Position numbers and translations under genes: made by a program. Below are positions 11,653-33,669 of a stretch of DNA of 64,000 bases, piece after piece. The stretch's first letter is position 1. Each line of letters begins with the position of its first letter. The stretch spans positions 62,001-126,000 of IMG/VR virus record IMGVR_UViG_3300042691_042003. One strand, given 5' to 3'. A model generated the notes under the pieces. That model was not told where the DNA came from. It did no database searches and saw nothing but the letters and a program-made list of their open reading frames with translations.

Positions 11653-12441
11653 ATGGGACTTATTAAATCGTACGATGAATTTATTAATGAGAATTTGTAT
11701 GGACAATATTCATATTATGGTGCAGGTTCTCTTTATCCAATCGTTAGTAAATTAGCAACTGAAGGAAAAAATCCTCAACAAATTTATCTTTATCTTACTA
11801 CTTTAGGTATTGATGAAGAAAGAAAAAGAAAAGTTATTACTCAAGTTTTTTTAAATGAATCTATAGATTTCGATTCTATTCAAGAAAAGGGAGGACTTTA
11901 TGAGGATGATGTAGAAGATATTCTTAAGGCAGATACAAAAGATCTTGAAAAGGGTATTGAACCTTCAAAAGCTAAATCTGAAAAAGATGAAGAAATAAAG
12001 AAAATTTTAGATACTTCTAAGTCTGATGAAGATGATGAAGAGAAAGAAGAAGAGAATGTAGAAAAGGATAAAGAAGACGTTTCTACGAAAGTTTCTGCTA
12101 TACAATCAGTTCTTAAAGATGCTCAAAAATTAGAAAAAATTAAGAAAATCCTTTCTGAATCTATGGGATTCGATATAGATGGAGTTGATGATGAAGTTTT
12201 AATGAATATTTTTAATTATCATAAAGTTATTGAAGCTCTTACTCCAGCAGAAAAAGATAAATTAAAACCTTCTGATTTTATATTTCCTGATAAAAGATCT
12301 TGGCCAATCCATGATGAAAAGCATGCTAAAACTGCTTTAGTTTGGGCTACTTGGCCTCAATATAAAAATATAAAAAATGAGGTAGTTTCTGCAGTTATTA
12401 AAAGATATCCACAACTAAAAGGAATAGGAGCTTCTAAATAA
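11653..12441 (+). CDS. Putative head internal protein with capsid-targeting-like leader and C-terminal DUF6582-like domain
   Basis: MGLIKSYDEFINE leader; LTPAEKDKLKPSDFIFPDKRSWPIHDEKHAKTAL domain after VIE/A. Confidence 0.6.
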   Translation: MGLIKSYDEFINENLYGQYSYYGAGSLYPIVSKLATEGKNPQQIYLYLTTLGIDEERKRKVITQVFLNESIDFDSIQEKGGLYEDDVEDILKADTKDLEKGIEPSKAKSEKDEEIKKILDTSKSDEDDEEKEEENVEKDKEDVSTKVSAIQSVLKDAQKLEKIKKILSESMGFDIDGVDDEVLMNIFNYHKVIEALTPAEKDKLKPSDFIFPDKRSWPIHDEKHAKTALVWATWPQYKNIKNEVVSAVIKRYPQLKGIGASK

Positions 12442-14030: not shown

Positions 14031-14387
14031 ATGTACGTAAAACCTAAAGAATTCTATGAGGAAATTTGTATTTCCCTAGAACAAAAAAAGTTAACCAAAA
14101 AGGCACAGGATATGCTTATCCTTATTGCCTATAGAGCTAATACTAAGCTGACTTATGAAAACCCTATGGATAGGGAAGATTGTATTTCTTTTGCCCTTTT
14201 GGACCTTTTTAAATATTGGGATCGATTTAAACCTGAAAAAACAAAAAATGCGTTTGCTTTTTTTACACAAGTAGCAAAGAATGGTTATGCTAAAGGTTGG
14301 AATAAATTAAGACCTGGAAAATACAAAGGAACCATTTCTCTTAGTGGAAAAAGCAATGCAGATTCCGATGGAATATATTCTGTATAA
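14031..14387 (+). CDS. Late-transcription sigma factor (gp55-like)
   Basis: YVKPKEFYEEI start; REDCISFALLDLFKYWDRFKPEKTKNAFAFFTQVAKN matches the gp55 region-2 pattern. Confidence 0.8.
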   Translation: MYVKPKEFYEEICISLEQKKLTKKAQDMLILIAYRANTKLTYENPMDREDCISFALLDLFKYWDRFKPEKTKNAFAFFTQVAKNGYAKGWNKLRPGKYKGTISLSGKSNADSDGIYSV

Positions 14388-14839
14388 TGAAGAATCTTCT
14401 TACATACGATCAATTTAATGAACAATACCTTCCTTATTTTGGAGTAAAACAAGCCTTAGATGATTCTAAGAATTTCATTACGAATGAGGAAAAAATGTCT
14501 GATTTTCATAGAATTTATACTATGAGTCCTACTTGGTGGATTGCTTGGAAAAGAGAAAATGGAGAAGATTATGGAATTAAACAAGATGCATTTTCTAAAA
14601 CTTATTCGGTTTCTAAAGGAGGAAAAGTTTCTTTTATTTTTGATTATGGTAGAAATAAAGTTTTTACTAATGAATCTCCTGAAATTTTAAAGTTAAAAAA
14701 AGATTTATCTCAAAAAGAATTCGATAAAATAAAAGATAAAGCCGAAGGGGTTGGAAAACCCAAAGAAGATAAAGGAGAAAAGAAAGAAAAAAAGAAAGAA
14801 AAAGGAGCAGATGACATCATGTCATCATTAGGAATATAA
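14387..14839 (+). CDS. Putative head internal protein (leader MKNLLTYDQFNE)
   Basis: Shared N-terminal leader; charged C-terminus. Confidence 0.6.
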   Translation: MKNLLTYDQFNEQYLPYFGVKQALDDSKNFITNEEKMSDFHRIYTMSPTWWIAWKRENGEDYGIKQDAFSKTYSVSKGGKVSFIFDYGRNKVFTNESPEILKLKKDLSQKEFDKIKDKAEGVGKPKEDKGEKKEKKKEKGADDIMSSLGI

Positions 14840-14860
14840 AAAAAAATAAAAAAATAAAAA

Positions 14861-15778
14861 ATGAAAAATATTTTAACATTTGAAAACTTTATTAATGAAT
14901 CTTCGGATTTTAATGGCTTCGATAAAGACGACAATGATTTAATTTATGAATTAAATTACATGTATAATTTATTTGGATCCGGAAGGGATAACAGAAAAAC
15001 CAGGACATATGAATCTAATTTATTGTCTATTTATGAGTACTTTATGGAAAGTAACGAAGAATTTAGTCAATCTATCCTTGATAATTTACTTTTTGAAGCA
15101 GATGAAGAGAAAGAATTAAAAAAAGATATGCAAGCTAGAGATGAATTGGAAATGGGAGATAAATCACTTCCTATGAAAGTAGCTAGACTTATAACATGGA
15201 TTCCCCCTTTTACTCCAGTTAGAATAGGTTATGAACTTCTTAAAATTGTTGATAAAAAAGAAAAGATTAAGAAGCTTTTGAAAAATGTTCCTGAAGGTCC
15301 AAAAAAAGAAAAATTAAGAGCAGAATTAAATAATCTAAAACATAGTCAAGTTAATGCAGTTGCTCAATTAAAGAAAGCTAGAGTAACTAAAGAAGTAGGA
15401 ATTAGATATTCAAAACCTGATCAAGTTGTTCGTCAAGAAGTTAAACAAGTAAAGGATTCTTACAATTATGAAAACGACGAGGATATTCTAGAAAATATTT
15501 ATTTTGAAGGTCTTTCTAAGATTGTTAATATACTTGAAGCAAAAGGAAAAATTAGTGCTGAACAGAAAGAGAAAATTATGAAGCAAGCTGAATCTAAAGG
15601 TAAGGCCGAAGGAAAATCTTTAGCTTCAAAAGCTCAAAGTATTGCAAAGAAAATTTCTCAAAACCCTGATAAAAAGGCTGAAGCTTTAGACTCTTTAAAA
15701 CAAAAAGCAGAATCTGAAAAGGAAGCTTGGAAGAAATTAAAGCAAAAAGCAGAAGAAAAAGGAATTACTTTAGGATAA
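14861..15778 (+). CDS. Putative head internal protein (leader MKNILTFENFINE)
   Basis: Shared leader; internal LFE/A and ILE/A sites; Lys-rich helical segments. Confidence 0.6.
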   Translation: MKNILTFENFINESSDFNGFDKDDNDLIYELNYMYNLFGSGRDNRKTRTYESNLLSIYEYFMESNEEFSQSILDNLLFEADEEKELKKDMQARDELEMGDKSLPMKVARLITWIPPFTPVRIGYELLKIVDKKEKIKKLLKNVPEGPKKEKLRAELNNLKHSQVNAVAQLKKARVTKEVGIRYSKPDQVVRQEVKQVKDSYNYENDEDILENIYFEGLSKIVNILEAKGKISAEQKEKIMKQAESKGKAEGKSLASKAQSIAKKISQNPDKKAEALDSLKQKAESEKEAWKKLKQKAEEKGITLG

Positions 15779-16593
15779 TGAAGAATTTGAAAACATACGA
15801 AGAATTTTTAAATGAATCGATTCCTTCTTACTCTTTTGATGGAAATCAAATTGAAGTGGGATCTTCGGTTCAGTCTTTGGATGGATTTTCAGGCATTATA
15901 ATTTCAAAAGAAATTTCTAACGGTAAAGTTTCTTTTAGAGATAATAAAGGAATTATTCACATCTGTGAATCAAAAGATCTTATTATCGATGATTTAAATG
16001 AGGGATTAAAATGGTGGGATATAGCTAAAGGTATTGTTGCTTCAGATGCTATTAAAACCGGACCTAATTTTAAGAACGGAAGTATTCTTTCTACTTTAAT
16101 TTCTTTAGCATGGAGAGATAAAATTACAAATAAAATTGAATCTATAAGAAATAAGCCAGGTTATGATGAAATGAAAGATGTTGCTTTTACTCTAGCTGAT
16201 AAATTAAGTAACGATCCTAGAATGTATGGGTTAGTTAACAAATTAGCTAGTCATCCTAGAATAACTACAATTTTTACTCCTTCTCAAAAAGAAAAAATAA
16301 AAGCTGCTAAAGTTAATTTAGAAAGACAACAAATTATTAAAGATATTTCTAGTTATATCAATGATTCTTTAACTCCTGAAGAAAAGAAATTTTTTGATGA
16401 TATAAATAATTTAATTAAAATAAAAAACCCAGAATCCGAAGAAATAGAAGAAGATGTTACAACCGATCCTAACAGAACAGTCGGAACCGGAACATACACA
16501 ACTACACATTCGGATCCAAATGTTTTAACTAAAGGATATTCTAATACTACCGATTCTGGATCTAATGGAAGCTATCCGGTTTATATAGGCTAA
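15778..16593 (+). CDS. Putative head internal protein (leader MKNLKTYEEFLNE)
   Basis: ATG at 15778 (TAATG overlap) preferred over TTG 15727; second LNE/G site inside. Confidence 0.65.
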   Translation: MKNLKTYEEFLNESIPSYSFDGNQIEVGSSVQSLDGFSGIIISKEISNGKVSFRDNKGIIHICESKDLIIDDLNEGLKWWDIAKGIVASDAIKTGPNFKNGSILSTLISLAWRDKITNKIESIRNKPGYDEMKDVAFTLADKLSNDPRMYGLVNKLASHPRITTIFTPSQKEKIKAAKVNLERQQIIKDISSYINDSLTPEEKKFFDDINNLIKIKNPESEEIEEDVTTDPNRTVGTGTYTTTHSDPNVLTKGYSNTTDSGSNGSYPVYIG

Positions 16594-16619
16594 GATAAAT
16601 ATAAAAAAATAAATTTTAA

Positions 16620-17015
16620 ATGAAAAATTTACTCTCTTTTGAAGAATACATTAATGAAAATTACATCCAAGAAGCCACAGATGCTGATGGGTTTGATCCT
16701 GCTAAAGGAAATGTAACAGATCCTGAAAAAGGTGATATTAAAGCAACTACTGGGAAAAATAATGACCCTGGATTTACTTCGGATCAAGCTCCTGATAAAA
16801 TTGCAAGTCCTGTTTCTACTATTTCTGATATGAAACCAGGTAAAGAATATGTTCTTACCGTAGATGGTAAAAAACATACTGATATGCTTTATCAAGGTGT
16901 TACTGATGGAGTTCATATTTTTAACGGAGAAGATAAGGCTCATGATATCACTTTTACCGATTCTGATTTATCCTCTGTTATCTCTAAAGGTGGTGTAGTA
17001 GAAGTTGCCGAATAA
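16620..17015 (+). CDS. Putative head internal protein (leader MKNLLSFEEYINE)
   Basis: Shared leader; preceded by GATAAATA; C-terminal module shared with 12470..14029. Confidence 0.65.
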   Translation: MKNLLSFEEYINENYIQEATDADGFDPAKGNVTDPEKGDIKATTGKNNDPGFTSDQAPDKIASPVSTISDMKPGKEYVLTVDGKKHTDMLYQGVTDGVHIFNGEDKAHDITFTDSDLSSVISKGGVVEVAE

Positions 17016-18297: not shown

Positions 18298-19911
18298 ATG
18301 GCCGGTTTTGTAAATCGAGACGAAACTTCACAAGGAGCACCGACTCCTGCTGCAAGAAATTTAGTCAGTAAAGCATTAAAATCTCTTTCATCATTTGGAA
18401 TGATGTATGATGATATGGTGCTTAAAAATTCTAAAGCTATTGGTATTAATGAAGATCGATATGGTTGGAGGATGGATCCTCGAAATGTTGCAGGAGGAGA
18501 ATATGACGATTATGCACTTTTTGCTAATCTTTCAATGACTGATATCAATCTTAGAAAATCGATTTCTATTTTTGATAAATCATATCCAAAGAAAAGAGAA
18601 GATTTAAGAAAATTCGCTATCCAAGATGAAATTGAAGAAATTCTAGATACCCTTTGTGATGAAGCAATTGTTTATGACGATAAAAATTATTTTTGTTTCC
18701 CTCTCGCTTTTGATGATGAAACTCTTGAACCTGGAACTCTTGAAGCAATAAAAATTGCTCTTGATACTAATTTTAAAAGAATTTATCAGTATTTTGGATT
18801 TAATAATGATATAGCTGGATGGTCTTATTTCCGTAAATGGTTAGTTGATGGTTATCTTGCTTTTGAAATTATCTACAATAAAGATCAAACAAGAATTATT
18901 GGATTTAAAGAACTTGATCCTATTTATCTTGAGCCGGGTCTCGATAAAGAAGGAAAGAAAATTTGGAAACAATTTAAAGGTCAACCTAACAAAGAAAGAC
19001 TTATTTATGATTCACAAGTAATTTATATTTCATATGCAAACGTAAATACTGTTAATCGAGTTTCTTATGTTGAAAGATTAATTCGTTCTTTTAACCTTTT
19101 AAGGATTATGGAACATTCTAGAGTTATTTGGGCAACTGTTAACTCTTCATTTAAGACTAAATTTGTTATTCCAGTTGGAGGAAAATCAAAAACTCGAGCT
19201 AAACAATCTCTTGGAGTTCTTATGCAGAATTACAGAGAACAAATTGATTTTGATACTGATTCAGGAGAACTAAAAGTTAATGGTAAACCAATGATGCCTT
19301 TCAATAAAGAATATTGGTTACCTTCCGGTGAAGCTGGAGAACCAACTATTGAAACAATCGGCAATGATGGACCTGATCTTTCAGATACTGAAGCTCTTAA
19401 ATATTTTAGAGAGAAGCTGATTAAGGTTTCTAAAATCCCCCTTTCAAGATTTGATATGGAATCTCCTCCTTCTTGGGAAATGAATGCTGAAGGGATGACT
19501 AGAGATGAAATTAAATTTGGTCGTTTTATTACTCGTCTTCGTTCTGTATTCCAAGAAATTCTAGTAAAACCTCTTTGGATTCAAATGTGTTTAGATTTCC
19601 CTGAATTGAAAGATGATGATGCGTTTAAAGCACAAATTGGAGTAAAATATCATAAATATAATATTTTTGAAGAAATGAAAGAAATTGAAATTCTTCAAAA
19701 AAGATTAGATTTTGTAACTTCAATGAAAGATGGCCTAGTTGAAACCGATGCAAATATGAATGAAATTAAATATTTTGCTTCTGAATTCTTAATACAAAGA
19801 TTCTTAGGTCTTACTCCGGATGATCTAAGAGTTAATAGAAAACTTAAAGAAATTGAAGATCGAGAAAAGATAGAATTAGCTAAAAAATCAGCTGAAGCTA
19901 CTGGAATATAA
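18298..19911 (+). CDS. Portal protein (gp20)
   Basis: WLVDG, ELDP, SYVER, EYWLP, SKIPLSR, TRDEIKFGRFITRLR. Confidence 0.95.
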   Translation: MAGFVNRDETSQGAPTPAARNLVSKALKSLSSFGMMYDDMVLKNSKAIGINEDRYGWRMDPRNVAGGEYDDYALFANLSMTDINLRKSISIFDKSYPKKREDLRKFAIQDEIEEILDTLCDEAIVYDDKNYFCFPLAFDDETLEPGTLEAIKIALDTNFKRIYQYFGFNNDIAGWSYFRKWLVDGYLAFEIIYNKDQTRIIGFKELDPIYLEPGLDKEGKKIWKQFKGQPNKERLIYDSQVIYISYANVNTVNRVSYVERLIRSFNLLRIMEHSRVIWATVNSSFKTKFVIPVGGKSKTRAKQSLGVLMQNYREQIDFDTDSGELKVNGKPMMPFNKEYWLPSGEAGEPTIETIGNDGPDLSDTEALKYFREKLIKVSKIPLSRFDMESPPSWEMNAEGMTRDEIKFGRFITRLRSVFQEILVKPLWIQMCLDFPELKDDDAFKAQIGVKYHKYNIFEEMKEIEILQKRLDFVTSMKDGLVETDANMNEIKYFASEFLIQRFLGLTPDDLRVNRKLKEIEDREKIELAKKSAEATGI

Positions 19912-19956: not shown

Positions 19957-21801
19957 ATGAGCAATTATTTACTTGTACTAGAAAGATCTGAAGGTAATCT
20001 TGCAGTTTCGAAAGAAGGCGATAAGTATGTCCTAGAAGGAATTTTTACTGAAATCGGAGTAAAGAATAAAAATAATAGAATTTACGACGAAAAAGAATTA
20101 CTTCCACATATTGAAGAGCTACAAACAAAATTAAAAGGAAATAAACTTCTTGGAGAACTAGATCATCCTAAATCTTTTGATATTTCTCTTAGAAATGCAT
20201 CACATGTAATAGAAGATATTAGCTATGATAAAGGGTCTAAGAAAGTTACTGGTAGAATTCGTTTACTTAATACGGATGCCGGTAAACAAGCTATGGCTCT
20301 TGTTGACGCTGGAGTTCCTCTTCATATTTCTAGTAGAGCTGCTGGTGTTGTTGAAGGTAATGGTCATGTAAAAATTAAGAAAATGTTTACTTATGATTTA
20401 GTTGCAGATCCTGGATTTGCTAACGCTGAATTAAAAAGAGTAAACGAATCTTTTGGATTTTCTGATGACGATTTAATTCAAATATTTGAAATTCCTAGCA
20501 CAATAGACGAATCATTTGTTGATGATAAATATACAAAACAAACAAAAAAAGAAGAAATGGATTCTAATCAATACATCAAGGTTGAGGATTTCAATGAATA
20601 TACCAAGCATTTAAAAGAAGAAATCGACGGATTGAAAAAATCTTTAACCGAATCTAAAAATTCAAACGATTCTGAAATCAATGAAGGTTTAGTTCGTTAT
20701 GCTGAAGAAACAGCAAAGAGAGTAAATCAAATCCAAGAATATGTTGGAAAACTTGCCGAATCGGTTGATGGTCTTATTTCACATAACGATTATATCGTTG
20801 AAAATCTAGAAAAAGTTAAAGATTATGCTGAAATGGTTGGAGAAAGATCTAATCAAGGTATTAATTATGCTGAGAAGCTTGCTGAATCGGTAGATCATCT
20901 TATCGAATATACCAAGATAATTGCTGAGAAAGCTGATCAAGGTATCGAATACACTAAGCATATTGCTGAAATGACAGATAATAATATCGAATACACAAAG
21001 CACGTTGCTTTAAAAGCTGATCAAGGTATCGAATACACTAAGTATATCGCTAATGAAAATTCTAATCGTTGGAATTATCAAACCTATATGAATGAGCAAC
21101 TTGATAATGTAATTTCTCATAACGATTATATCGTTGAAGGAACTTCTTCTATTATTGAATATACTGAATATCTCAAAGAACAAACCGAAAATCTTGCTAA
21201 TTACATGAACCATGTGGTTGAAAAGATTAATGAAGGATTTGTTCCTAATTCTTTTGAACCTAAAGATGATTTTGAAAAAGAAATTTCTGAAAAAATCGGA
21301 TCTATTTTAGAATCAGTTAAAGAAGAGGTTTCTTTTGAAAAGAAAGATAATAATTTGAATTTCTTAAATTTCCTTTCTGAAAGTAAAAGAAATCAATTCC
21401 ATTCTCTTAACGATGATATGAAAGAAAGAGTTATTTCTACATTTGAATCTAATAAATATTATGGTTCTGCTGATGCAGAAAAGCTTTTCGAATCTATCTT
21501 TATTATTCAAGCCCCTGTAATGAATTGGCTATCTAATATGCCTTCTAAATACAGAGAAGCATGGAACGGACTTAATGAATCTCAGAAAAATGCAATCAAA
21601 GCTCAAGCTTCTGTTAGAAATCTTGATACTCAATACAAAATTGACGATTTCTGGTCTACAAGAGATTTAAGAACTGTTAAAGTTGAAACTCCTCTTACTG
21701 AATCTAATGAAACAGTAATTGAAGAATCCCCTAAATATGTAACTCCTTCTACATATATGCAAACAGTTGAAGACGAATTAAGAAGGAGATTTAAAAGATA
21801 A
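19957..21801 (+). CDS. Prohead protease (gp21) fused to a scaffold/core domain
   Basis: LEGIF, NKNNRIY, GELDHP, ISSRAAG, YDLVADPGF in the first ~160 aa; then ~450 aa acidic coiled coil. Confidence 0.9.
   Translation: MSNYLLVLERSEGNLAVSKEGDKYVLEGIFTEIGVKNKNNRIYDEKELLPHIEELQTKLKGNKLLGELDHPKSFDISLRNASHVIEDISYDKGSKKVTGRIRLLNTDAGKQAMALVDAGVPLHISSRAAGVVEGNGHVKIKKMFTYDLVADPGFANAELKRVNESFGFSDDDLIQIFEIPSTIDESFVDDKYTKQTKKEEMDSNQYIKVEDFNEYTKHLKEEIDGLKKSLTESKNSNDSEINEGLVRYAEETAKRVNQIQEYVGKLAESVDGLISHNDYIVENLEKVKDYAEMVGERSNQGINYAEKLAESVDHLIEYTKIIAEKADQGIEYTKHIAEMTDNNIEYTKHVALKADQGIEYTKYIANENSNRWNYQTYMNEQLDNVISHNDYIVEGTSSIIEYTEYLKEQTENLANYMNHVVEKINEGFVPNSFEPKDDFEKEISEKIGSILESVKEEVSFEKKDNNLNFLNFLSESKRNQFHSLNDDMKERVISTFESNKYYGSADAEKLFESIFIIQAPVMNWLSNMPSKYREAWNGLNESQKNAIKAQASVRNLDTQYKIDDFWSTRDLRTVKVETPLTESNETVIEESPKYVTPSTYMQTVEDELRRRFKR
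20860..21060 (+). repeat. 42-bp (14-aa) period degenerate repeat in the scaffold domain
   Basis: ADQGIEYTKHIAEM / TDNNIEYTKHVALK / ADQGIEYTKYIANE; AGCTGATCAAGGTATCGAATACACTAAG at 20931 and 21015. Confidence 0.85.
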
Positions 21802-21894: not shown

Positions 21895-23529
21895 ATGTAT
21901 TTAATTAACGAACAAGAAGTTTTCGGTAAATGGGCTCCAATTATCGAATCAACTACCGGCATTCAGGATCGTTCTAAAGTTGAATGGATGTCTAAGTACT
22001 GTCATTATCATGAATTGTACGAAAATAATAACCTCGCTCAACTTGGTGCTGTAAATGGCATGGGAGCTACTCGTTTCCCTGGAGATCCAGGAACTCAAAG
22101 TCAGTTCTTCTCTCAAGAAACTGGTTCTGGTGATAAGGCTCACACTCTTCTTCCTCTTGCTATGCAAGTTGCAGCTCAGACTGTAGGTCTTGATCTAGTT
22201 CCTGTTGTACCTATGCCTGGTCCTATGGGTGTTCTTACCTATCTTGACTTCGTATATGGTGGTGGTAAAACTAATGGTACTGGTGCTAACATTCCTCTCC
22301 TTGTAAAAGTTGATGTAGGATCTACTGCTGCTCCTGGTGCTGCTGGAACTACTGGAGGTATTACTTATACTTATGTAGGACCTTCTCGTATTGACGGTAA
22401 TGCTATATTCCATATTACTGGTTCTCTTACTACTGGTACTATTCTTTCTAATATGTATGCTTCTGCTGGTTCTACTAACCTTAACAATGTTAAATATACT
22501 GGAGCTGTTACTAAGGTTGAATTAGTTAAAGCTCTCGAAGATCATATTACTGGTTTCTCTGGAGATTCTCTTCGTGCTGGAATTTATGCAGATACTGCTA
22601 ATAATGGTGTTAATGATCCTCTTTCTCGTTTTGATGGTGAAGGAACTCAAGATAACATCATGAACTTAAGCCTTTTCAACAAATCTGTTGAAGCTAAAAC
22701 TTTCCAAGTTGCTGCTGCTGTTACTCGTGAGCAAGTTCAGGATCTTAAGCAATTTGGAGTTGATGCTGTTTCTCAGGTTGAATCTGTTCTTATTAACGAA
22801 CTTACTCAATCTATCAACAAGAACATTCTTTCTAGAATCTTCGCTCTTGGTGAAAGAAACCACTCTCAAGTTATTTCTACTCAAGGTCTTAACTTCTTCT
22901 TGAACCTTGGTTCTATTCCTAGATTAGTATCTTATGCTTCTGTTACTAACGCTCCTTATACTGCTTTTGCTTCTTATCTTAGCAGCAATTACAGTAATTT
23001 AACAGGTGCTACAATGAACGCAACTGAAAATTCTTCTTCACCTGCTGAAAACCTTTCTACTCGTCAGCGTAAGATCATGTCTAAGATCCTTGCAATTGCT
23101 AACCTAATTGCTATCCGTGGTCGTCGTGGTCCTGCTACTTTCGTAGTAACTAACGGTCAAGTATGTTCTGCTCTTCAGGATGTAGCTGGTTTCGTACCTG
23201 CTCCTATGGCTAACACCATCAATCAGATGAGCGGTTCTCTTTACCCAATCGGTACCCTTGCTGGTCTTGCTATCTACAACGATCCTAACATGGCTTGGAA
23301 CGATACTCGTTTCTGTGTAGGTCGTAAAGGTGATGGTAATTCTCCAGGACTCGTATTTATGCCTTACTTGATGGCTGAATCTGTTCAGACTATCGCTGAA
23401 GGTACTATGGCTCCTAAGGTTGCTGTTAAGTCTCGTTATGCTCTCGTTGAAGCTGGTTTCCACCCACAAACCATGTATTTAACTTCCGGAGTTCATATCG
23501 ATTCTCTTATCGCTGGAGGTTTAGTATAA
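21895..23529 (+). CDS. Major capsid protein (gp23)
   Basis: KWAPIIE, VVPMPGP.G, EQVQDLK, LINE....IN, RRG...FVV, FMPY, P...VKSRYAL. Confidence 0.95.
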   Translation: MYLINEQEVFGKWAPIIESTTGIQDRSKVEWMSKYCHYHELYENNNLAQLGAVNGMGATRFPGDPGTQSQFFSQETGSGDKAHTLLPLAMQVAAQTVGLDLVPVVPMPGPMGVLTYLDFVYGGGKTNGTGANIPLLVKVDVGSTAAPGAAGTTGGITYTYVGPSRIDGNAIFHITGSLTTGTILSNMYASAGSTNLNNVKYTGAVTKVELVKALEDHITGFSGDSLRAGIYADTANNGVNDPLSRFDGEGTQDNIMNLSLFNKSVEAKTFQVAAAVTREQVQDLKQFGVDAVSQVESVLINELTQSINKNILSRIFALGERNHSQVISTQGLNFFLNLGSIPRLVSYASVTNAPYTAFASYLSSNYSNLTGATMNATENSSSPAENLSTRQRKIMSKILAIANLIAIRGRRGPATFVVTNGQVCSALQDVAGFVPAPMANTINQMSGSLYPIGTLAGLAIYNDPNMAWNDTRFCVGRKGDGNSPGLVFMPYLMAESVQTIAEGTMAPKVAVKSRYALVEAGFHPQTMYLTSGVHIDSLIAGGLV

Positions 23530-24187: not shown

Positions 24188-25285
24188 ATGAAAGATTTAA
24201 ATTCTATAAAAGATTTATATTTGTATAAATTATACGAAGAAAATCTAATAAGTTCATTAGAAGAAATTTTAAATGAAGAAGATTCTAAGGAAGGAGAAAA
24301 AAAATCTCTTATCGATAAGATAAGAGATAAGATAAGGTCTTTGAGAGAAAAGATGCCAGAAAATCCTGATAATAAACCTGCTATTACTAAAAAAAGAGAA
24401 GCTATTTCAAATAAAATTGATACTCTTAAAGACCAAGTAGAAAAAGAGGAAAAAAAGGAGGAATCTAATGATAAAAAAATTAAAAGATTAGAAGAAGAAT
24501 ACAAAAAGGCTAAAGAAAATTATGAATCTCAGTATGCCGATTTAGTAGAAGCTGGTAAAAGTGCTAGAGAAGCTACTCATAAAATTCTTGAAAGTGGATT
24601 TTTTGGAAGAGTGAATTTTTTTGCTTGGTTATTTGTTAGTAGTAGAAGAGCTAAAACTAGGGTTGAATTTCTAGAAGGTCTTTCTAAAATGATTCCTAAT
24701 CAAGAAAAAGCTAAAATGGTTGATGATCAGCTTAATAAAGCTAAAGAAATCGCTGATTCTTTAACAAAACAAATGGATGAAGCTGAAGAAAGGGGAGAAG
24801 AATCTGCTAAGAAAACAGATCCAAAAAAATTAGAAAAAGCACAATCTTCTGAAACTCCTGAAGAAACTCCTGAAGAAACTCCTGAAGAAACTCCTGAAGA
24901 AACTCCAGAAAAAGGAGATGAAGAAAGGCAAAATTTAATGGGTTCCGGAAGTTCAGAAGAACCTAAAGAAGATGATCTAAAAAAAGAAGAACCTAAAGAA
25001 GATACAGAAGATGAGAAGAAAAAAATTGAATCTCAAATAGACGAATTAAAATCTAAATTAGAAGATGTTAAAAAATCGGCTGAAGAGAAAAAATCAGAAG
25101 GTGATGAAGAATCTTATAAATCAATAATGGATAACGTTGAAAAAATTCAAAATGTTATTAAAGAATTAGAAGATAAAAAATCAACATTAGAATCTTTTGA
25201 TGAAGATAGCTCTAAAATTTGGGCAATTAATTGGTTATTAAATGATCTTCAAAATAGAATTAATCTAGGAGAACTAAATGGTTGA
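24188..25285 (+). CDS. Highly charged coiled-coil protein, putative head internal protein
   Basis: E/K-rich; LYE/E, LNE/E and LE/S sites; ETPE repeats. Confidence 0.65.
   Translation: MKDLNSIKDLYLYKLYEENLISSLEEILNEEDSKEGEKKSLIDKIRDKIRSLREKMPENPDNKPAITKKREAISNKIDTLKDQVEKEEKKEESNDKKIKRLEEEYKKAKENYESQYADLVEAGKSAREATHKILESGFFGRVNFFAWLFVSSRRAKTRVEFLEGLSKMIPNQEKAKMVDDQLNKAKEIADSLTKQMDEAEERGEESAKKTDPKKLEKAQSSETPEETPEETPEETPEETPEKGDEERQNLMGSGSSEEPKEDDLKKEEPKEDTEDEKKKIESQIDELKSKLEDVKKSAEEKKSEGDEESYKSIMDNVEKIQNVIKELEDKKSTLESFDEDSSKIWAINWLLNDLQNRINLGELNG
24851..24910 (+). repeat. 5 x 12-bp tandem repeat (GAAACTCCTGAA) encoding ETPE
   Basis: Read directly from the sequence. Confidence 0.92.
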
Positions 25286-25766
25286 AATTCGTAGACAAAA
25301 TGCAGGCAAAACACCTACAAAATACGGAATAGTTACAAAAGGTCTAAAACCTAGATATAAAAAAGTTCTTAATGAAAATCCGGTTATTAAGAAATATTCG
25401 GATGATGATAGGTTCATACAGGCCATCTTCAGGATTGAAGATGAGAAGATAAGATTATCCCATTTACAAAGGCCGTTTGTTCACCCTGTGTCAAAAGAGA
25501 TATACACGTTTGAATGTATTAAAGACTCTTATAAAATATTTAATTGGGAATGTGCTTATTGTAAAATTCCAATACAATCGAGAATAGATAGATTTAGTCC
25601 TGATAATTTTACATGTGAAAAATGCTATAAGTACTATATTAAAGATTCTAAAAAAATAAATCAAAGAATTATTGAGTCTTCACTTTCTTTTACCGAAAAA
25701 TGTAAGAGGATGATGATAGATAATCAGAAATCATTCTTAAAATATCTAAAGAAAAATGAAAAATAG
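25278..25766 (+). CDS. Hypothetical zinc-finger protein
   Basis: CAYC...CEKC; basic. Confidence 0.6.
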   Translation: MVEIRRQNAGKTPTKYGIVTKGLKPRYKKVLNENPVIKKYSDDDRFIQAIFRIEDEKIRLSHLQRPFVHPVSKEIYTFECIKDSYKIFNWECAYCKIPIQSRIDRFSPDNFTCEKCYKYYIKDSKKINQRIIESSLSFTEKCKRMMIDNQKSFLKYLKKNEK

Positions 25767-27231
25767 GTTCGATTATTTTGATCAATTTGTTTTAAATGAA
25801 GCTAAGAAAAATAAAACCCCTAAGATTAAGGTTCTTATGCTCTCAAATATTAGTGAAGAATCTTATACTGTTCCTGCAGTTGAAGCCGAATGTAAAAAGA
25901 GGGGGATAGTTTTCCGTATTATCGATATTAACACTTGCTCTTTAATTAAAGATAAGAAAGGAGACGGTTATATTATAAATGATAAAACTAAGGTTCCTTT
26001 TAAAATAGATTCTGAAGACACAGCTATACTTACTAGAAGAGGAGTCGTTAGAAGTACTATGACGAGAGATCTTATTTCTCAATTAGAGGATGCCAATTTC
26101 TTTGTTGTTAATACTCTTGAATCTATTCTTGCTTGTGAGAATAAATTTGTCACTTCAAAAATTCTTATGAATGCTGGAATTCCAGTTCCTAAAATGGCAA
26201 TTGTTGATGGTGAAGAATCTATCGATTCAGCTCTAAAAGAAATAGGTGGTCAATTTCCTATAGTTCTTAAAATGCTTTCAGGATCTCATGGTATTGGAGT
26301 TTCTATTATTGAATCTCTCGCTTCTCTTAAATCGGTTTTACAAACTATGTGGAAAATCGATCCAAATATCGAAACTCTTATTCAAGAAAAAATTGATTCT
26401 GATTACGATCTAAGAATCCACGTTCTTACTAAAAGATTTAATTCTCCTTCTCCGGATGAAACCGATTCAGTTCTCCTTGGTTATATGAGACGTAATAGAG
26501 TTAAAAAAGATTTCAGAACTAATTATTCTCTTGGAGGAACGGTTGAAAAAACTAAGGTTACTCCTGAACAAGAAAAAATTGCGATTGAGGCTGCTAAAGC
26601 TGTAGGTTGTAATTGGTGCGGTGTTGATCTGATCGTTGATAAGAAAACGAAGAAAAATTATGTTCTTGAAGTTAATTCTTCTCCAGGAACACAAGGTTTG
26701 AAAAAAGCTACAGGAGTCGACGTAGTAAAAGATATAGTTGATTTTCTTTCGGATAAAAAGAATTGGATTAGATCTCGTAGAGTTATAGGTTTTAGAGAGG
26801 TAATAACAATTCCAGAAATAGGTGATGTTATTGCTAAATTTGATACTGGTAACGGAGCTATGTCTTGCTCATTAACTTACGATACTGCAGAATTAATTGA
26901 TGGAGATAAATTTATCGAATGGGAATTAGGAGGTAAAAAATTCAAAAGTAAAGTAGTAGGATTTTCTACTGCTGAAGTCGGTCCTAAAACACACGAAAGG
27001 CCTACTATTCTTATGGACATATCTTTTGCAGGTAAAACTTATAAAGATGTTGAAGTTTCTCTAGTAGACCGTAAAGAAAAATCTACTAAATTCTTAGTAA
27101 ATAGAAAATTCATGGAAAGAATAGGATGTTCTGTTTCTCCTTATAAAACATTTATGATTACTTCTTTTGATGGAGAATATTCAGCAAGAGATGCAAAAGG
27201 AGATCCACATGCAGGAATAAAATTTATATAA
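25756..27231 (+). CDS. rimK: RimK-family ATP-grasp ligase fused to a C-terminal retropepsin-like (RimB-type) protease, with capsid-targeting-like leader
   Basis: GIPVPK, FPIVLK, GSHGIGV, IQEKI, DLRIHV, FRTNYSLGG, GVDL, LEVNSSPG; then IGFRE...AKFDTGNG...RP....LVDR...LVNR. Confidence 0.88.
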   Translation: MKNRFDYFDQFVLNEAKKNKTPKIKVLMLSNISEESYTVPAVEAECKKRGIVFRIIDINTCSLIKDKKGDGYIINDKTKVPFKIDSEDTAILTRRGVVRSTMTRDLISQLEDANFFVVNTLESILACENKFVTSKILMNAGIPVPKMAIVDGEESIDSALKEIGGQFPIVLKMLSGSHGIGVSIIESLASLKSVLQTMWKIDPNIETLIQEKIDSDYDLRIHVLTKRFNSPSPDETDSVLLGYMRRNRVKKDFRTNYSLGGTVEKTKVTPEQEKIAIEAAKAVGCNWCGVDLIVDKKTKKNYVLEVNSSPGTQGLKKATGVDVVKDIVDFLSDKKNWIRSRRVIGFREVITIPEIGDVIAKFDTGNGAMSCSLTYDTAELIDGDKFIEWELGGKKFKSKVVGFSTAEVGPKTHERPTILMDISFAGKTYKDVEVSLVDRKEKSTKFLVNRKFMERIGCSVSPYKTFMITSFDGEYSARDAKGDPHAGIKFI

Positions 27232-27233
27232 AT

Positions 27234-27485
27234 ATGAAAAAGCTAAAAAATATTCAATCAATTGAAGAATATTTAGGAGAAGCAGCAGGTTCTCCTAATA
27301 CAGAAAATTATATGTTTTTTGAAAATCTAAAAACTATAAAACAAAGTATAGAAGAACTTATGACCCTTGATCCTATTATGGTAGATCAAATTCTTCAAGA
27401 TGGTCATGATTGGGCAGAAGATCATATTGCAACTGCTAAGGAATCAATCGATCAGGTTACTCACTTTTTTATGAACAAAAAATAA
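27234..27485 (+). CDS. Small helical protein with leader-like N-terminus (IQSIEEYLGE)
   Basis: 83 aa; GHDWAEDHIATAKE. Confidence 0.65.
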   Translation: MKKLKNIQSIEEYLGEAAGSPNTENYMFFENLKTIKQSIEELMTLDPIMVDQILQDGHDWAEDHIATAKESIDQVTHFFMNKK

Positions 27486-27493
27486 AGGTCAAT

Positions 27494-27802
27494 TTATCGA
27501 CCTTTTTTCATTTTTATAATCATTAGAATTGATAGAAGAATCGAAGTGCTCATAAATCCATATGCAATGAATTTTGGAATTTGTGAATGAAATTCATGAA
27601 GCATCCAAAATATATTCATAAAAATCCAAGAAGTAACGGTTAAATTTTCTAATCTATTTTCTTTCTCGGTCCATAACATATAAAGAGAGAAAAAGATTGT
27701 TGGAACCGTCATTATTTTTGCAAGGAGAGATAATTGAAGGCACCATAATGAATCTTTAATTACCCAAGAAATAATATGCAGCTTATTAGAAATTTCTTTC
27801 AT
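27494..27802 (-). CDS. Small membrane protein
   Basis: Three to four hydrophobic segments; start overlaps the speD stop. Confidence 0.7.
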   Translation of the reverse strand: MKEISNKLHIISWVIKDSLWCLQLSLLAKIMTVPTIFFSLYMLWTEKENRLENLTVTSWIFMNIFWMLHEFHSQIPKFIAYGFMSTSILLSILMIIKMKKGR

Positions 27803-28227
27803 TAGTATTCAGAATTATTATAGCTGCTATGATCTCTTTCAATAGTTTCAGATCCATTAGACACTACATGTAAACCTTTATTTCGATCGATCATCATCCA
27901 ATCATAACTAACAAGTTCCATCATATCTAAATGATCTATAACTGTTTGAAGTTCATATTTTTTACATGAATAAATATCAAATTGTAACATAGGAACTTCT
28001 AAAGCATCCCATATATGAATTGAAGCATGAGATGTTGCTAAGGTAACAGTTCCAGTGATTCCTTCATTACCTTCTTCATCAACATAAACCGATGTAGGTC
28101 CAGCAACTACGACCATTCCAACTTTTTCTACTAAATCTCTAAACCATTTATTTAAGATTTCTTCTGATTTAATAGGTTTTTTACAAAAAGCTTTTACCAA
28201 CAAATGTTGATGATAGGGTATGAACAT
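27802..28227 (-). CDS. speD: Pyruvoyl-dependent S-adenosylmethionine decarboxylase family proenzyme
   Basis: HQHLLV, GITG...LATSHASIHIW (self-cleavage serine), FDIYSCK. Confidence 0.88.
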   Translation of the reverse strand: MFIPYHQHLLVKAFCKKPIKSEEILNKWFRDLVEKVGMVVVAGPTSVYVDEEGNEGITGTVTLATSHASIHIWDALEVPMLQFDIYSCKKYELQTVIDHLDMMELVSYDWMMIDRNKGLHVVSNGSETIERDHSSYNNSEY

Positions 28228-29976: not shown

Positions 29977-30231
29977 ATGAAAAATTTCCCTTCTTATGAA
30001 GAATTCTTAAATGAAGGAAATTGGTCTCAAATGATGAAAGGTGTAAGAACTGGTTCGGTCCCTTACACTATTGTTGCTATCGATAGAGTAGCTAAAAAAG
30101 TCGTAGGCCAAGAAATCGTTAGTATTCGTGATGCAGTTCCTGCTTATTACGAAGATATGAAACGTAGATTCTCTAAGTTTCATTTACATATTGAAGATTC
30201 TACTGGAAAGGTAGTTTGGTCAGAAAAATAA
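29977..30231 (+). CDS. Leader-tagged putative internal protein 1 (MKNFPSYEEFLNE)
   Basis: Shared leader. Confidence 0.7.
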   Translation: MKNFPSYEEFLNEGNWSQMMKGVRTGSVPYTIVAIDRVAKKVVGQEIVSIRDAVPAYYEDMKRRFSKFHLHIEDSTGKVVWSEK

Positions 30232-30239
30232 AATCAGAA

Positions 30240-30617
30240 ATGAACACACATATTAAATCATTTAATGAATTCCTTAATGAAAGTGTAAATGATCCTGTTC
30301 TCGTTGCTTTACGTGCTGCTAAAGAAGATCGTAAAAAGATGATGATGGATAAGAAAGAAAGAATGAAAAGGCGAGTTTACGGTGCAAAACGTGAACAAAT
30401 GGAAGCTGAGCTAGATAAAATCTGGCAAGAAATTAAGGATAATAAGCAGCAACAATCTGATCTTTGGAGAGAAATGGAAGCCGAGGCCGGTGATAAGAGC
30501 CCAAACTTTTCAGATGCAGATGGCAACCGTTATGGTCAAAAATTCAACGATCTTGATGATGAATTAGAAAAGCTTTATCGTCGTCGTTCTGAATTAGAAA
30601 CAAAATTAGCATATTAA
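30240..30617 (+). CDS. Leader-tagged putative internal protein 2 (MNTHIKSFNEFLNE), coiled coil
   Basis: ATG 30240 preferred over TTG 30216; shared leader. Confidence 0.7.
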   Translation: MNTHIKSFNEFLNESVNDPVLVALRAAKEDRKKMMMDKKERMKRRVYGAKREQMEAELDKIWQEIKDNKQQQSDLWREMEAEAGDKSPNFSDADGNRYGQKFNDLDDELEKLYRRRSELETKLAY

Positions 30618-30618
30618 G

Positions 30619-30870
30619 ATGAATCATATTCCTTCATTTGAAGAATTTTTAAACGAAAGTTCTCATTATAAAATTGACGATTTCCAAGTTGGAGATGTTA
30701 TTCACTTTAAAGATGGTGAAGCTTGGAAAGTTGTTAAAGTTAATAATATAAGAGATTTAATCTCAGTATTTCCTCATAATAAGTTAGCAAAAGATAAAAA
30801 CGTTAGCATAACGATAGAATTAAGACTTAAATATCTTAATGATAACGTAACAAAAATTGAAAAGTCTTAA
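30619..30870 (+). CDS. Leader-tagged putative internal protein 3 (MNHIPSFEEFLNE), SH3-like body
   Basis: Shared leader; FQVGDVIHF..G..WKVV. Confidence 0.7.
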   Translation: MNHIPSFEEFLNESSHYKIDDFQVGDVIHFKDGEAWKVVKVNNIRDLISVFPHNKLAKDKNVSITIELRLKYLNDNVTKIEKS

Positions 30871-30871
30871 T

Positions 30872-31699
30872 ATGAAAAATATCCCTTCTTTTGAAGAATT
30901 CGTAAACGAAAGTTTGAACGAATCTCTTAGCTTAACTCTTAGGGATGTTCCTAAAATCGTTAAGGATTTCGTTTCGAGGACTAAATATATCAAAAATCTT
31001 AAAGAAAAAGATTGGTTAACTGCATCGGAAATTATCATAGTAACTGATAAAGATTTTGATATAAAAGGTAAATCAACAACTGGCAATTATATGTTGCTAG
31101 GACTTTATAAAACTTATGGACCTGTTTATAAAGTTGAATGGGCATCCGTAAGACCTGATATGAAATATCCTGCTAATGCTGGAATCTATAATAAAGAGAT
31201 TGATAAAGCCACATGGGAAAAACTAAAAAATGCCCATGAAAGAAAAATGATCGATCCAAAAAGTCTTACGGCTAATGATATTAAAAACACAGGAGATCTT
31301 TTAGGTAAATTCATAACCGATGAAATTAATACATCTTCGGTTCCTGTTAAAGGTCAATTTGATCCAACAAATTCAGGATCAATTAAAATGGAAATTGAAA
31401 GTGCTTATAAAGATTCAGAAGTTAGTATCGTTAGAGGAGATAATGTAAGAGTAGATTTCTACTTTAAACGTGCTGGTGATGGCCGTAATGTTGCTAAAAC
31501 TAATCTATTCTTTATCATAGATCCTTCTCAACAATCGGTAGAATTTAAAAATCCTGATGTTAGTGGTCTTAGTAGAGCAAACTACAGAAATATGAGAGAT
31601 ATTTCAGCATTCTTTAAGAGTTCTATTCAAGCTTGGAAGGATGAAGATAAGAGAAGATCAGATGCTATGCAACAAACAGCATTTAGTCAAGATAGATAA
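30872..31699 (+). CDS. Leader-tagged putative internal protein 4 (MKNIPSFEEFVNESLNE)
   Basis: ATG 30872 preferred over TTG 30857; shared leader. Confidence 0.7.
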   Translation: MKNIPSFEEFVNESLNESLSLTLRDVPKIVKDFVSRTKYIKNLKEKDWLTASEIIIVTDKDFDIKGKSTTGNYMLLGLYKTYGPVYKVEWASVRPDMKYPANAGIYNKEIDKATWEKLKNAHERKMIDPKSLTANDIKNTGDLLGKFITDEINTSSVPVKGQFDPTNSGSIKMEIESAYKDSEVSIVRGDNVRVDFYFKRAGDGRNVAKTNLFFIIDPSQQSVEFKNPDVSGLSRANYRNMRDISAFFKSSIQAWKDEDKRRSDAMQQTAFSQDR

Positions 31700-31714
31700 A
31701 AAAATAAAACAATA

Positions 31715-32014
31715 ATGAATAATCATATTCCATCATTTGATGAATTTTTAAATGAAAGTTCTCTTCAAGGAACTCCTAAATTTCTTCCAGGTAAAGCTGC
31801 TATTGCTTATGGTGATGAAGAAGGTAAAATCGTAGCTGCTGAATTTGCTAAAGATTGGAAGAAACTTAAGAAATACGACGAAACCGGTTGGTTAGATCCT
31901 ACTGAAATGAAAAACATGGGAATCGAACCTACAGATATTCTCGTAGCCTTCAAAGATTCTGAAGGAGGAATTAATGTATACACTTACGGTGAAGGAGGTG
32001 TAGAGCTAAAATAA
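31715..32014 (+). CDS. Leader-tagged putative internal protein 5 (MNNHIPSFDEFLNE)
   Basis: Shared leader. Confidence 0.7.
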   Translation: MNNHIPSFDEFLNESSLQGTPKFLPGKAAIAYGDEEGKIVAAEFAKDWKKLKKYDETGWLDPTEMKNMGIEPTDILVAFKDSEGGINVYTYGEGGVELK

Positions 32015-32025
32015 AAAATTAAAAA

Positions 32026-32583
32026 GTGAAACATATACAATCGTTCGACGAATTCATTAATGAATCAGAAGATCAGAATCTTCCTCTTAATGAAAATAAT
32101 TTAGTTTATATTAAAGATAAGAAATTTAAATCTTCACAAGATATTATGAATTTCTTTCAGAAAAATGCAGGTTCCGCTTTTGAAAAATTTATTTCTGATA
32201 AAATGGGAGTGAAAGCTAAAGCTGTAACTGGAGTTTCCAGAAGAGGTGATGCTGTTAATATTTCTACACAACCAATTTCTAAAAAAGATTTAGGAATTTT
32301 TGGATTTGTTTTTAGTGAAGTATCTATCGATTCTTTTGGTGGAGGTATAATTGAACATCAAATGGTAAATAATATGCAATTTGAATTTTGTCCTGCTATC
32401 TTCTTTAGATTACATGTTAGTTATAAACATATAGGAGGTGGTTCTAACGGTGCCGATATTGTACTTCCTAGTAATGATCCTTACAATACTCTTATTATGT
32501 ACGATATCGTAGAAAATCGTTTTCTAGATCAGGCCGAAGCTAAAGCTTCTAAAACTAAATATTGGGTCGAAGGATCTTGGTAA
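32026..32583 (+). CDS. Leader-tagged putative internal protein 6 (MKHIQSFDEFINE)
   Basis: GTG start; shared leader; second LNE/N site. Confidence 0.7.
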   Translation: MKHIQSFDEFINESEDQNLPLNENNLVYIKDKKFKSSQDIMNFFQKNAGSAFEKFISDKMGVKAKAVTGVSRRGDAVNISTQPISKKDLGIFGFVFSEVSIDSFGGGIIEHQMVNNMQFEFCPAIFFRLHVSYKHIGGGSNGADIVLPSNDPYNTLIMYDIVENRFLDQAEAKASKTKYWVEGSW

Positions 32584-32599
32584 AAATAAAATTTAAATA

Positions 32600-33427
32600 G
32601 TGAAACATATAAAATCATTTGACGAATTTTTAAACGAAGGTCTTAACGAGGCTAATATCTCATTCTATAAAAATGTAGTTCAGCAAGCTATTAAAGATGC
32701 TTTAGGGCATGATGTAAAACAATCTGATGTTAAAGTAGGAGCAAAAAAGCAAAGTGGAGGATATGATTTGATTACTCTTAATGGAAAACTTCTTTGCTCT
32801 TCTTCTCAACACGATGAAATGCTTCGTTCTGCAACTAATGCAATTAAAGAAGATCCTGCTAAGTATGGTTTGAAAGAATCTGCAATGAACGAAGCAATGA
32901 CTTTCGATGATGCTGTAAAGCAATTTACTGCAAATCCTTATGGAATTGGTGCTAGTCGAGTTCATGTTGTAGGAGATGAAGAACATCATGTTAAAGGTCA
33001 TAGAATTCTTAAATTCTTTCATTCAACTGCTTTCGATAGAGATAAAACTATGGCTAAACTAAAAACTCTAGGTTTTAGCGCAAAGAACATGACAAAGAAC
33101 ATGACCGATAAAGGATATATGTTCAGATATTATATAAGCCTTTTTGAAGGAGCAGTAAATGAAGATTCTATTGATGAAGCTGCTAAATGGCCTCTAACCG
33201 ATAAAATTGACAGTAAAACTTTTTATGATATGTGGGCTTCTTTAGATGTTGCTACTCAAAATCTCAGTGATTATATGGATGAAGCAAATAAAGGAAAAGA
33301 AAGTGATGCTCTATTCTCTTTGAAAGTTGCTTATGATGAGCTAACTGATTTAATGAAAAGTAAGACAATCGAAAAGCAGCTAAAAGCTATTGCAGAAGAG
33401 CTAAAAGATAAAAATGCACTTAAATAA
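32600..33427 (+). CDS. Leader-tagged putative internal polyprotein 7 (MKHIKSFDEFLNEGLNE)
   Basis: GTG start; shared leader; clustered internal sites LKE/SAMNE/A and LFE/GAVNE/DSIDE/A. Confidence 0.7.
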   Translation: MKHIKSFDEFLNEGLNEANISFYKNVVQQAIKDALGHDVKQSDVKVGAKKQSGGYDLITLNGKLLCSSSQHDEMLRSATNAIKEDPAKYGLKESAMNEAMTFDDAVKQFTANPYGIGASRVHVVGDEEHHVKGHRILKFFHSTAFDRDKTMAKLKTLGFSAKNMTKNMTDKGYMFRYYISLFEGAVNEDSIDEAAKWPLTDKIDSKTFYDMWASLDVATQNLSDYMDEANKGKESDALFSLKVAYDELTDLMKSKTIEKQLKAIAEELKDKNALK

Positions 33428-33429
33428 TT

Positions 33430-33669
33430 ATGAAGAATATTCCCTCTTTCGAAGAATTCTTAAATGAAGCTGCAAGAGTCGATACATTTCCTTACAAAGC
33501 TTCACATTCTAAAGATCCTAAAGGTTTTGGACTTTGGTATTTTAGTTTCAGTAAAGATGGTTCCGATTCCTTTTCCCCTGAAAAATCTATGAGTTACGGA
33601 GATGCTTTGAAATGGGCACAAGCTCAAGCAAAAGAAAAGAAACAATCTGTTATTTATGTAATGGGATAA
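33430..33669 (+). CDS. Leader-tagged putative internal protein 8 (MKNIPSFEEFLNE)
   Basis: Shared leader. Confidence 0.7.
   Translation: MKNIPSFEEFLNEAARVDTFPYKASHSKDPKGFGLWYFSFSKDGSDSFSPEKSMSYGDALKWAQAQAKEKKQSVIYVMG

Follow-up and report, generated by a model that had tools for sequence, protein, structure and literature searches.

The 64,000-nucleotide stretch of DNA analysed here, hereafter called the window, covers positions 62,001 to 126,000 of the IMG/VR virus record IMGVR_UViG_3300042691_042003 and encodes on its plus strand, at positions 25756..27231, a protein of 491 amino acids (aa) in which a RimK-family glutamate ligase comes first and a retropepsin-like protease of the RimB/RloA type comes last. 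The identity of both enzyme domains can be assigned with high confidence. The explanation that best combines the available observations, to which we give a probability of roughly 55 %, is that this fusion protein is a packaged, proteolytically processed and ejected bifunctional glutamate ligase/protease of a jumbo T4-like phage. The finding itself is genuine, clearly defined and conserved, and it combines two known systems, RimK/RimB and the loading of cargo into T4-type heads. An original prediction, made from the letters of the DNA, had described the gene as a RimK-RimB fusion that appears to be addressed to the capsid, and the open reading frame (ORF), its motifs and its leader lie where it had placed them. 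The gene begins with the first ATG past an upstream stop codon, ends with TAA and has an intact reading frame.

The ligase module corresponds to residues ~22-335, within a segment (aa 16-335; 25801..26760) that Pfam, NCBIfam and fold comparisons resolve into pre-ATP-grasp and ATP-grasp domains. It is recognised by the Pfam RimK model PF08443 (E=3e-35, 121.8 bits for a cutoff of 21) and by the NCBIfam model TIGR00768 for the RimK family of alpha-L-glutamate ligases (160.1 bits, above the cutoff of 143.4). The ATP-grasp motifs had been called intact, and they are: K130, K172, R246, R254, D291, E305 and N307 are invariant in alignments of 49-51 relatives, and the G-V-D and E-V-N-S-S-P-G segments of the metal/ATP motif GVDLIV...EVNSSPG (nt 26620-26688) align with the same motifs in RimK chains. 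The closest solved relatives by sequence are the RimK proteins of Pseudomonas and E. coli. In an AlphaFold2 model of the fusion protein built from 49 relatives, with a mean predicted local distance difference test score (pLDDT) of 83, the ligase part was matched by Foldseek to the RimK structures 7qys, 5zct, 7qyr and 4iwx, with template modelling (TM) scores of 0.85-0.89 and root-mean-square deviations of 2.7-3.2.

Enzymes that attach glutamate to other acceptors have to be considered at this point, for the second and third best NCBIfam matches of the module are MptN and LysX and the fourth is CofF, all far under their cutoffs. A ligase that acts, like these, on a cofactor, a carrier protein or the precursor of a hypermodified base would also agree with the situation in Yersinia phage YerA41, which carries a distant homologue of the fusion (g112) with a LysW-like ORF nearby and whose thymidine is reported to be heavily modified (PMC9023294). 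However, the nearest solved relatives are RimK proteins by fold as well as by sequence, and the fact that the ligase is obligatorily fused to a protease of the polyglutamate type suggests polyglutamate as the product. Moreover, the window phage displays no sign of base hypermodification, although no search aimed at modification genes was made. A small-molecule or nucleic-acid-linked substrate thus appears very improbable.

The C-terminal domain (aa 336-491; 26761..27228) is a divergent retropepsin of the RimB/RloA type. A profile of 33 family members searched against the sequences of solved structures found RloA2 (9g59, E=3.8e-9), RloA (9g58, E=1.5e-7) and Lpg0085 (2pma, E=4e-4), with matches that span nearly the whole domain and, for RloA2, with the K-x-D-T-G, R-P and D-R motifs in register. 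The domain is modelled with a pLDDT of 89.6 and in this model does adopt the retropepsin fold that had been anticipated for it. Its top PDB matches are RloA2, Lpg0085 and RloA (TM 0.67-0.78, with 0.75-0.78 for RloA2), followed by the retropepsins of human immunodeficiency virus 1, equine infectious anaemia virus and Rickettsia. The catalytic D363-T364-G365 (nt 26842-26850), embedded in the sequence AKFDTGNG (aa 360-367; nt 26833-26856), is invariant in 51/51 aligned relatives, which include two homologues from cultured phages, and D[TS]G is found at the equivalent position in 120/120 close family members. RloA holds polyglutamate by means of K46, two residues before the catalytic D48, together with R114 and R137 (PMC12239564). 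By position and spacing only, three residues of the phage domain match these: K361, located at D-2, and two arginines, R415 of the R-P motif and R439 of the D-R motif. Among the 51 aligned relatives K361 is conserved to at least 90 % and both arginines are invariant. The D-R motif belongs to the first of two similar elements, LVDR at aa 436-439 and LVNR at aa 447-450. The alignment with RloA2-type sequences is gapped in a region that is likely to be the counterpart of the flap. That one chain joins a RimK ligase to a RimB-type retropepsin is the common result of the sequence, profile and fold comparisons.

At the N-terminus, residues 1-15 (25756..25800) form a leader in which an aromatic pair is followed by L13-N14-E15, with a predicted cut before A16. 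A strict pattern was defined as an aromatic residue, two polar residues, a second aromatic residue, zero or one further residue, an aliphatic residue, N, E and a small or polar residue, all within the first 25 residues. It occurs in 11 of the 74 plus-strand ORFs of the window, always beginning at residue 7-8, and is absent from the 19 minus-strand ORFs and from the 18,556 internal residues of the window. The resemblance to other tagged proteins on which the original prediction had relied thus extends to 10 ORFs besides the fusion gene, and three more carry looser versions. The proteins behind the leaders are unrelated in length and charge (predicted mature sizes of 7-34 kDa, pI 4.5 to 9.6), and Pfam and PHROGs scans of the other tagged proteins of the window gave no function. 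A spread of the leaders as DNA repeats or cassettes was considered and rejected: their codons show synonymous differences and the DNA upstream lacks conservation, which means that selection acts on the peptide and not on a DNA repeat.

Counted from the P1 glutamate, the leader consensus in the window has F/Y at -6, F/Y at -3, L/I/V at -2 and E at 0. The leader of the T4 internal protein IPIII, M-K-T-Y-Q-E-F-I-A-E, fits the same pattern. In the 10-residue capsid-targeting sequence (CTS) of T4, residues 4 and 7 serve targeting and residues 8 and 10 processing, and the T4 prohead protease gp21 cuts after L/I-X-E (PMC9026906; PMC3012670); recounted from the P1 glutamate, the T4 determinants are -6, -3, -2 and 0 and so coincide with the window consensus. 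Among 120 clusters of orthologues of the fusion protein, the leader spacer is found with no, one or two additional residues, and some members have a canonical leader devoid of any insertion, e.g., …K-T-Y-D-E-F-L-N-E|A-K. An (L/V/I)-x-E site is present in 118/120 clusters, mostly followed by A-K, with L/V/I at P3 in 117/118, E at P1 in 118/118 and A at P1' in 101/118. In the structural model most of residues 1-19 have a pLDDT <50; no other long segment is modelled with low confidence, and a propeptide would be expected to behave in this way. It is probable that the leader is a CTS-type propeptide which is cleaved and brings about the packaging of the protein, and the leader-bearing proteins of the window probably constitute a list of head cargo that can be read from the sequence.

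The tagged ORFs, at least 11 and perhaps 14 in number, are spread over the plus strand. They comprise a 262-aa ORF at 11653..12441, four ORFs just upstream of the head genes (starts at 14387, 14861, 15778 and 16620, within 14387..17015), a further series with starts at 29977, 30240, 30619, 30872, 31715 and 33430 (within 29977..33669) and a leader-bearing ORF at 62821-63117.

The protease that would recognise such leaders is encoded nearby. The plus-strand ORF 19957..21801 contains a T4 gp21-type prohead protease domain (Peptidase_S77, aa 24-134, E=3.6e-12), whose expected specificity matches the cut site; it lies upstream of the capsid gene, at a distance of two genes, and the T4-type portal protein gene (gp20; 18298..19911, +) precedes the capsid gene too. 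The S77 domain is fused to a C-terminal part of 454 residues with 13 [LI]xE[SAG] sites, i.e., 2.86 per 100 aa compared with 0.38 in the other genes, a 7.5-fold enrichment; none of 5000 shuffles reached 13 sites. Judged from this composition, the C-terminal part looks like a gp22-like scaffold destined for degradation. T4 encodes protease and scaffold in separate genes, 21 and 22, which in the window phage are one fused ORF. The scaffold region (~450 aa) also has internal repeats such as HNDYIVE and (Y)xEKLAE|SVD.

Each L/I-x-E cut leaves a C-terminal glutamate, the kind of end that RimK extends on the ribosomal protein bS6, and the scaffold with its 13 sites would supply many of them. One may thus imagine that the enzyme works in the prohead or head on phage proteins, extending Glu-ended fragments or internal proteins with polyglutamate that the protease trims, and that the resulting acidic peptides assist in removing the scaffold or in adjusting the ionic conditions inside the head. 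The capsid-address evidence would serve this scheme equally well. However, both the supply of ATP and glutamate and the activity of a ligase inside proheads are purely conjectural, and a search of the window ORFs for a phage-encoded substrate with a run of at least 8 Glu gave none. No run is longer than the EEEEEE of ORF 36767-37438, after which comes the EEEE of the clamp loader, and the few window ORFs that end in E or EE are not linked to the fusion gene. An intracapsid role of this kind is improbable. The six-Glu run of ORF 36767-37438 (+, 223 aa) lies at aa 190-195; RloA requires 8 in vitro.

The fusion gene is not peculiar to this window. Full-length orthologues of 56-92 % identity form at least 120 clusters on metagenomic contigs of up to 261 kb and are common in contigs of jumbo T4-like phages, which probably infect Bacteroidota. 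A 260,890-bp scaffold has the same gene order as the window: portal, S77, a small tagged ORF, capsid, three ORFs, fusion gene and clamp loader. In a member with 58 % identity the fusion gene is flanked by a gp13 neck gene on one side and by baseplate genes on the other. When the protease domain was used in an exhaustive profile search, 758 representative proteins were retrieved at E<=1e-3. The best 149 of these were classified and comprise 47 ligase-first fusions, 10 such proteins with an additional N-terminal domain ahead of the ligase, 13 fragments of such fusions, 61 proteases alone and 18 proteases with another partner. Leader-like N-termini occur in 25/47 of the distant ligase-first representatives, compared with 2-8 % of control segments. 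A stand-alone RimB-like protease of 163 aa (P0122; L009:632-1123) bears, directly ahead of its protease domain, the canonical leader …F-Y-E-F-V-N-E|S, which suggests that the protease by itself can also be head cargo. The contigs that carry this protein, P0167 and P0125 are too short or too poorly annotated for their gene neighbourhoods to be classified. Seven longer proteins (P0192, P0174, P0234, P0239, P0246, P0249 and P0269; 652-1202 aa) have in common an N-terminal motif G-R-F-x-P-P-x-x-G-H, and in most of them the domain with this motif precedes the RimK and RimB-like modules; when the extra domain was scanned in P0192, P0174 and P0269, a Pfam match (CTP_transf_like/FAD_syn) was obtained only in P0192, whose extra domain is cytidylyltransferase-like.

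Among 50,697 deposited phage genomes the protease domain was found only in Yersinia phages YerA41 and GN1 and in Pelagibacter phage Mosig, always behind RimK. YerA41 g112 (473 aa), once a 'putative ribosomal protein modification protein' and now annotated as a 'structural protein', was found by liquid chromatography with tandem mass spectrometry in purified particles according to the published proteomics. The deposited phage nearest to the window by head-gene DNA is LR756500.1, an uncultured phage of 462 kb, in which tblastn with the fusion protein found no match. Lak megaphages match part of the window capsid gene. In view of this resemblance a recoding of stop codons was considered and rejected, the window having long, intact ORFs that end in TAA (57), TGA (15) or TAG (8).

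In a collection of species-representative genomes, all 7/7 matches lie in metagenome-assembled genomes binned as Bacteroidota, which therefore point to Bacteroidota as hosts. Two of these genomes (L010 and L015) contain full-length ligase-first proteins of 497 aa, that of L015 with a leader and on a contig of low GC content and phage-like appearance. Four others (L012, L013, L014 and L016) encode proteins of 393-403 aa in which a degenerate, motif-less RimK-like part precedes a RimB-like domain; these have no leader, lie on contigs of 50-57 % GC and are 44-48 % identical to the phage protein in the RimB-like domain. The one neighbourhood examined, in L012, consists of ordinary bacterial genes (fabD-like and polyprenyl synthase-like). 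The arrangement of a ligase-like region followed by a protease is therefore not confined to phages, and these four proteins may record a past exchange between phage and host.

Taken together, the evidence can be arranged into the following sequence of events. The protein would most likely be made late and recruited to the core of the assembling prohead by its 15-residue capsid-targeting propeptide. The gp21-type (S77) protease of the phage would then cut after Glu15, and the mature protein, starting at Ala16, ~53 kDa in size and basic (pI 8.9), would be retained inside the head and ejected with the DNA into the host, as are T4 Alt and the internal proteins. There, the RimK module could use ATP to add alpha-linked L-glutamates to the C-terminal Glu of a protein, of which bS6 is the best-precedented example, or could polymerise free glutamate. 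RimK is known to glutamylate bS6 and to be able to make poly-alpha-glutamate, and RimB is a retropepsin-like endopeptidase that removes these glutamates and also stimulates RimK. The retropepsin domain would presumably dimerise, bind polyglutamate via K361, R415 and R439 and cut with D363, thereby setting the length of the tail and, as shown for Pseudomonas RimB, driving RimK turnover. An action of the packaged enzyme on the bS6 of the host, once it has been ejected, is a tentative proposal: the case for an injected glutamylation enzyme consists of sequence logic and one weak proteomic precedent. Equally doubtful, at present, is the more general scheme in which, throughout a clade of jumbo phages that are T4-like and infect aquatic Bacteroidota, the head carries a ready-made polyglutamylation machine that is injected and rewrites the C-terminal glutamate tail of a host protein, be it bS6 or another one that ends in Glu, before phage gene expression begins.

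A number of observations weigh against this explanation. As to the enzymes, the ligase scores 88.6 bits with the equivalog model for bS6--L-glutamate ligases (NF007764), under its cutoff of 331, so that bS6 specificity is not implied; on sequence grounds, the first domain is a RimK-family ligase and not a demonstrated bS6-ligase orthologue. When tested with the curated retropepsin models (PF05618 and NF052261-4), the protease domain of the window protein also stays under the cutoffs, with 14.6 vs 27 for PF05618 (E=0.03), 37.1 vs 250 for RloA2 (E=2e-9) and 14.9 vs 200 for RimB; the ligase-first relatives P0150, P0269 and P0140 do exceed the PF05618 cutoff. As to the address, the aromatic pair of the fusion protein is separated from L13-N14-E15 by an inserted V12 and so lies at -7/-4 and not at -6/-3, and the N-terminus of YerA41 g112 has no clear L/I-x-E site. 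The list of YerA41 proteins found in particles also holds polymerases, helicases and ribonucleotide reductase; since clearly non-structural enzymes are called particle-associated as well, contamination is possible and the particle evidence is weak. As to timing, g112 is a 'middle' gene, the homologue in Mosig lies among replication genes, and the T4 late-promoter consensus TATAAATA has 11 matches in the window vs 14.3 expected, so that late expression is not shown. A scan of the window for sigma-70-like promoters likewise stayed at chance level.

Several of these points would suit an auxiliary enzyme that remains in the cytoplasm, where it would be made during infection and would glutamylate and trim bS6 or another protein in order to bias translation; the N-terminal motif would then be a shared helix with another role, such as folding, docking of a partner or providing a context for translation initiation. 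The temporal class of g112 and the location of the Mosig gene in a replication module are as expected for such an enzyme, several leader-bearing ORFs of the window adjoin replication genes, and the RimK homologues of cyanophages and Methylophilales phages, which have no protease domain, are annotated as auxiliary or host-takeover functions. On the other hand, the motif is strictly N-terminal, ends in the cleavage site of the protease and is common to otherwise unrelated proteins, the gene of the relatives lies inside head and neck modules, and the YerA41 homologue was detected in particles. We therefore consider a purely cytoplasmic function unlikely and retain a packaged, processed and ejected ligase/protease as the best explanation.

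Some fusion-carrying phages have genes for ribosome-related proteins too, namely an S1-domain protein inside the structural module of one of them (L005:6684-7844) and a ribosomal protein S21 in Mosig (L002:503-712). They lend circumstantial support to a toolkit directed at translation.

The original prediction had assigned the fusion gene to the operon that follows the major capsid gene. It does belong to the co-directional run opened by that gene (21895..23529, +, Gp23 family), but it is the fourth gene downstream, three ORFs lying between with tiny gaps or overlaps. The last of these (25278..25766, +), of 162 aa and with a zinc-ribbon-like CxxC...CxxC motif, overlaps the start of the fusion gene by 11 nt, and the two appear to be translationally coupled; the pairing is kept in the 261-kb relative (L003), and the 162-aa protein could be a partner or a substrate of the fusion protein. 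It also contains a V-L-N-E|N site at aa 30-33. Two bases beyond the stop codon of the fusion gene begins the last gene of the unit, an acidic ORF of 83 aa (27234..27485, +) with a looser leader-like N-terminus (…SIEEYLGE|A), and a bidirectional terminator-like hairpin (27484..27505) closes the transcription unit. Freshwater metatranscriptome assemblies contain short contigs identical or near-identical to window positions 25767-25904, 26096-26240 and 26634-26981, which is compatible with transcription of the fusion gene without proving it; in the same runs relatives of the capsid gene are far more abundant than fragments of the fusion gene. Convergent to the operon lies a gene for S-adenosylmethionine decarboxylase, an enzyme of polyamine synthesis (27802-28227, -; Pfam AdoMet_dc, E=3.5e-12), for which a link to the charge balance of the DNA in the head is possible, as is a merely coincidental position.

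RimK and RimB polyglutamylate bS6 reversibly, and this has recently been characterised as one way in which bacteria reprogram translation. If the proposal is correct, a virus would seize this switch as soon as infection begins, by means of a single packaged and injected protein endowed with both activities. No earlier example of a glutamylase delivered by virions would then exist, and the enzyme would be a translational counterpart of the ADP-ribosylation of RNA polymerase by T4 Alt, and would add a new enzyme class to the few known ejected phage effectors. The leader, carried by at least 11 proteins in the 64-kb window, would define a readable 'cargo list' for an uncultured phage group. In addition, the reversed-order fusion is a compact and naturally coupled candidate for a poly-alpha-glutamate synthase plus protease, amenable to in vitro study.

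How the phage protein relates to known systems is best seen from its bacterial counterparts. The original prediction had emphasised that writer and eraser of glutamylation are combined in one polypeptide. Both domains are indeed present, but the combination as such is not new, for active bacterial RimBK hybrids with an N-terminal protease have been described in 12 % of rim-positive bacterial genomes, mainly those of Flavobacteriales and Rhodobacterales (PMC11957791), and RimB, as a stimulator of RimK, is more than an eraser. The phage fusion shares with bacterial RimBK (Desulfotalea psychrophila DP2392) the ligase and the retropepsin in a single chain and the conserved DTG aspartate and ATP-grasp residues. 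Unlike RimBK, in which the RimB domain is N-terminal, it has the ligase first and the protease at its C-terminus (aa 336-491), is phage-encoded, bears an N-terminal propeptide of the capsid-targeting type and has a protease domain divergent enough to fall under the cutoffs of curated hidden Markov models. The folds match those of RimK (TM 0.89) and of RloA2 (TM 0.75-0.78), and the polyglutamate-binding motifs K-x-D-T-G, R-P and D-R of RloA and RloA2 (9g58 and 9g59; PMC12239564) appear to be kept. Pseudomonas RimK and RimB are, however, separate proteins of a bacterial operon (RimABK) and the RloA proteins bear signal peptides, whereas the phage system is one chain, is ~24-26 % identical and comes without RimA or a c-di-GMP control partner.

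Within phages, the closest parallel for the address is provided by T4, whose internal proteins and Alt likewise have a short N-terminal propeptide with two aromatic positions, an L/I-x-E|A site and a gp21-type protease in the head module. T4 Alt is also the precedent for a packaged and ejected enzyme that modifies the host (PMC9026906). The T4 cargo includes an ADP-ribosyltransferase and an anti-restriction protein and that of the window phage would be a glutamate ligase/protease; the leaders count 10 residues in T4 and 13-15 in the window phage, for which packaging is a prediction. For the enzyme itself the nearest named relatives are YerA41_066/g112 and Mosig_00005, which are also ligase-first and protease-last, are ~34 % identical and keep the FDTGN motif, but belong to other phage lineages with different gene neighbourhoods and are annotated only as 'structural protein' and 'putative glutathione synthetase', the protease domain being recognised in neither record. 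What is new here is the ligase-first order together with a propeptide of the capsid-targeting type in phages, neither of which was found described in the literature searched.

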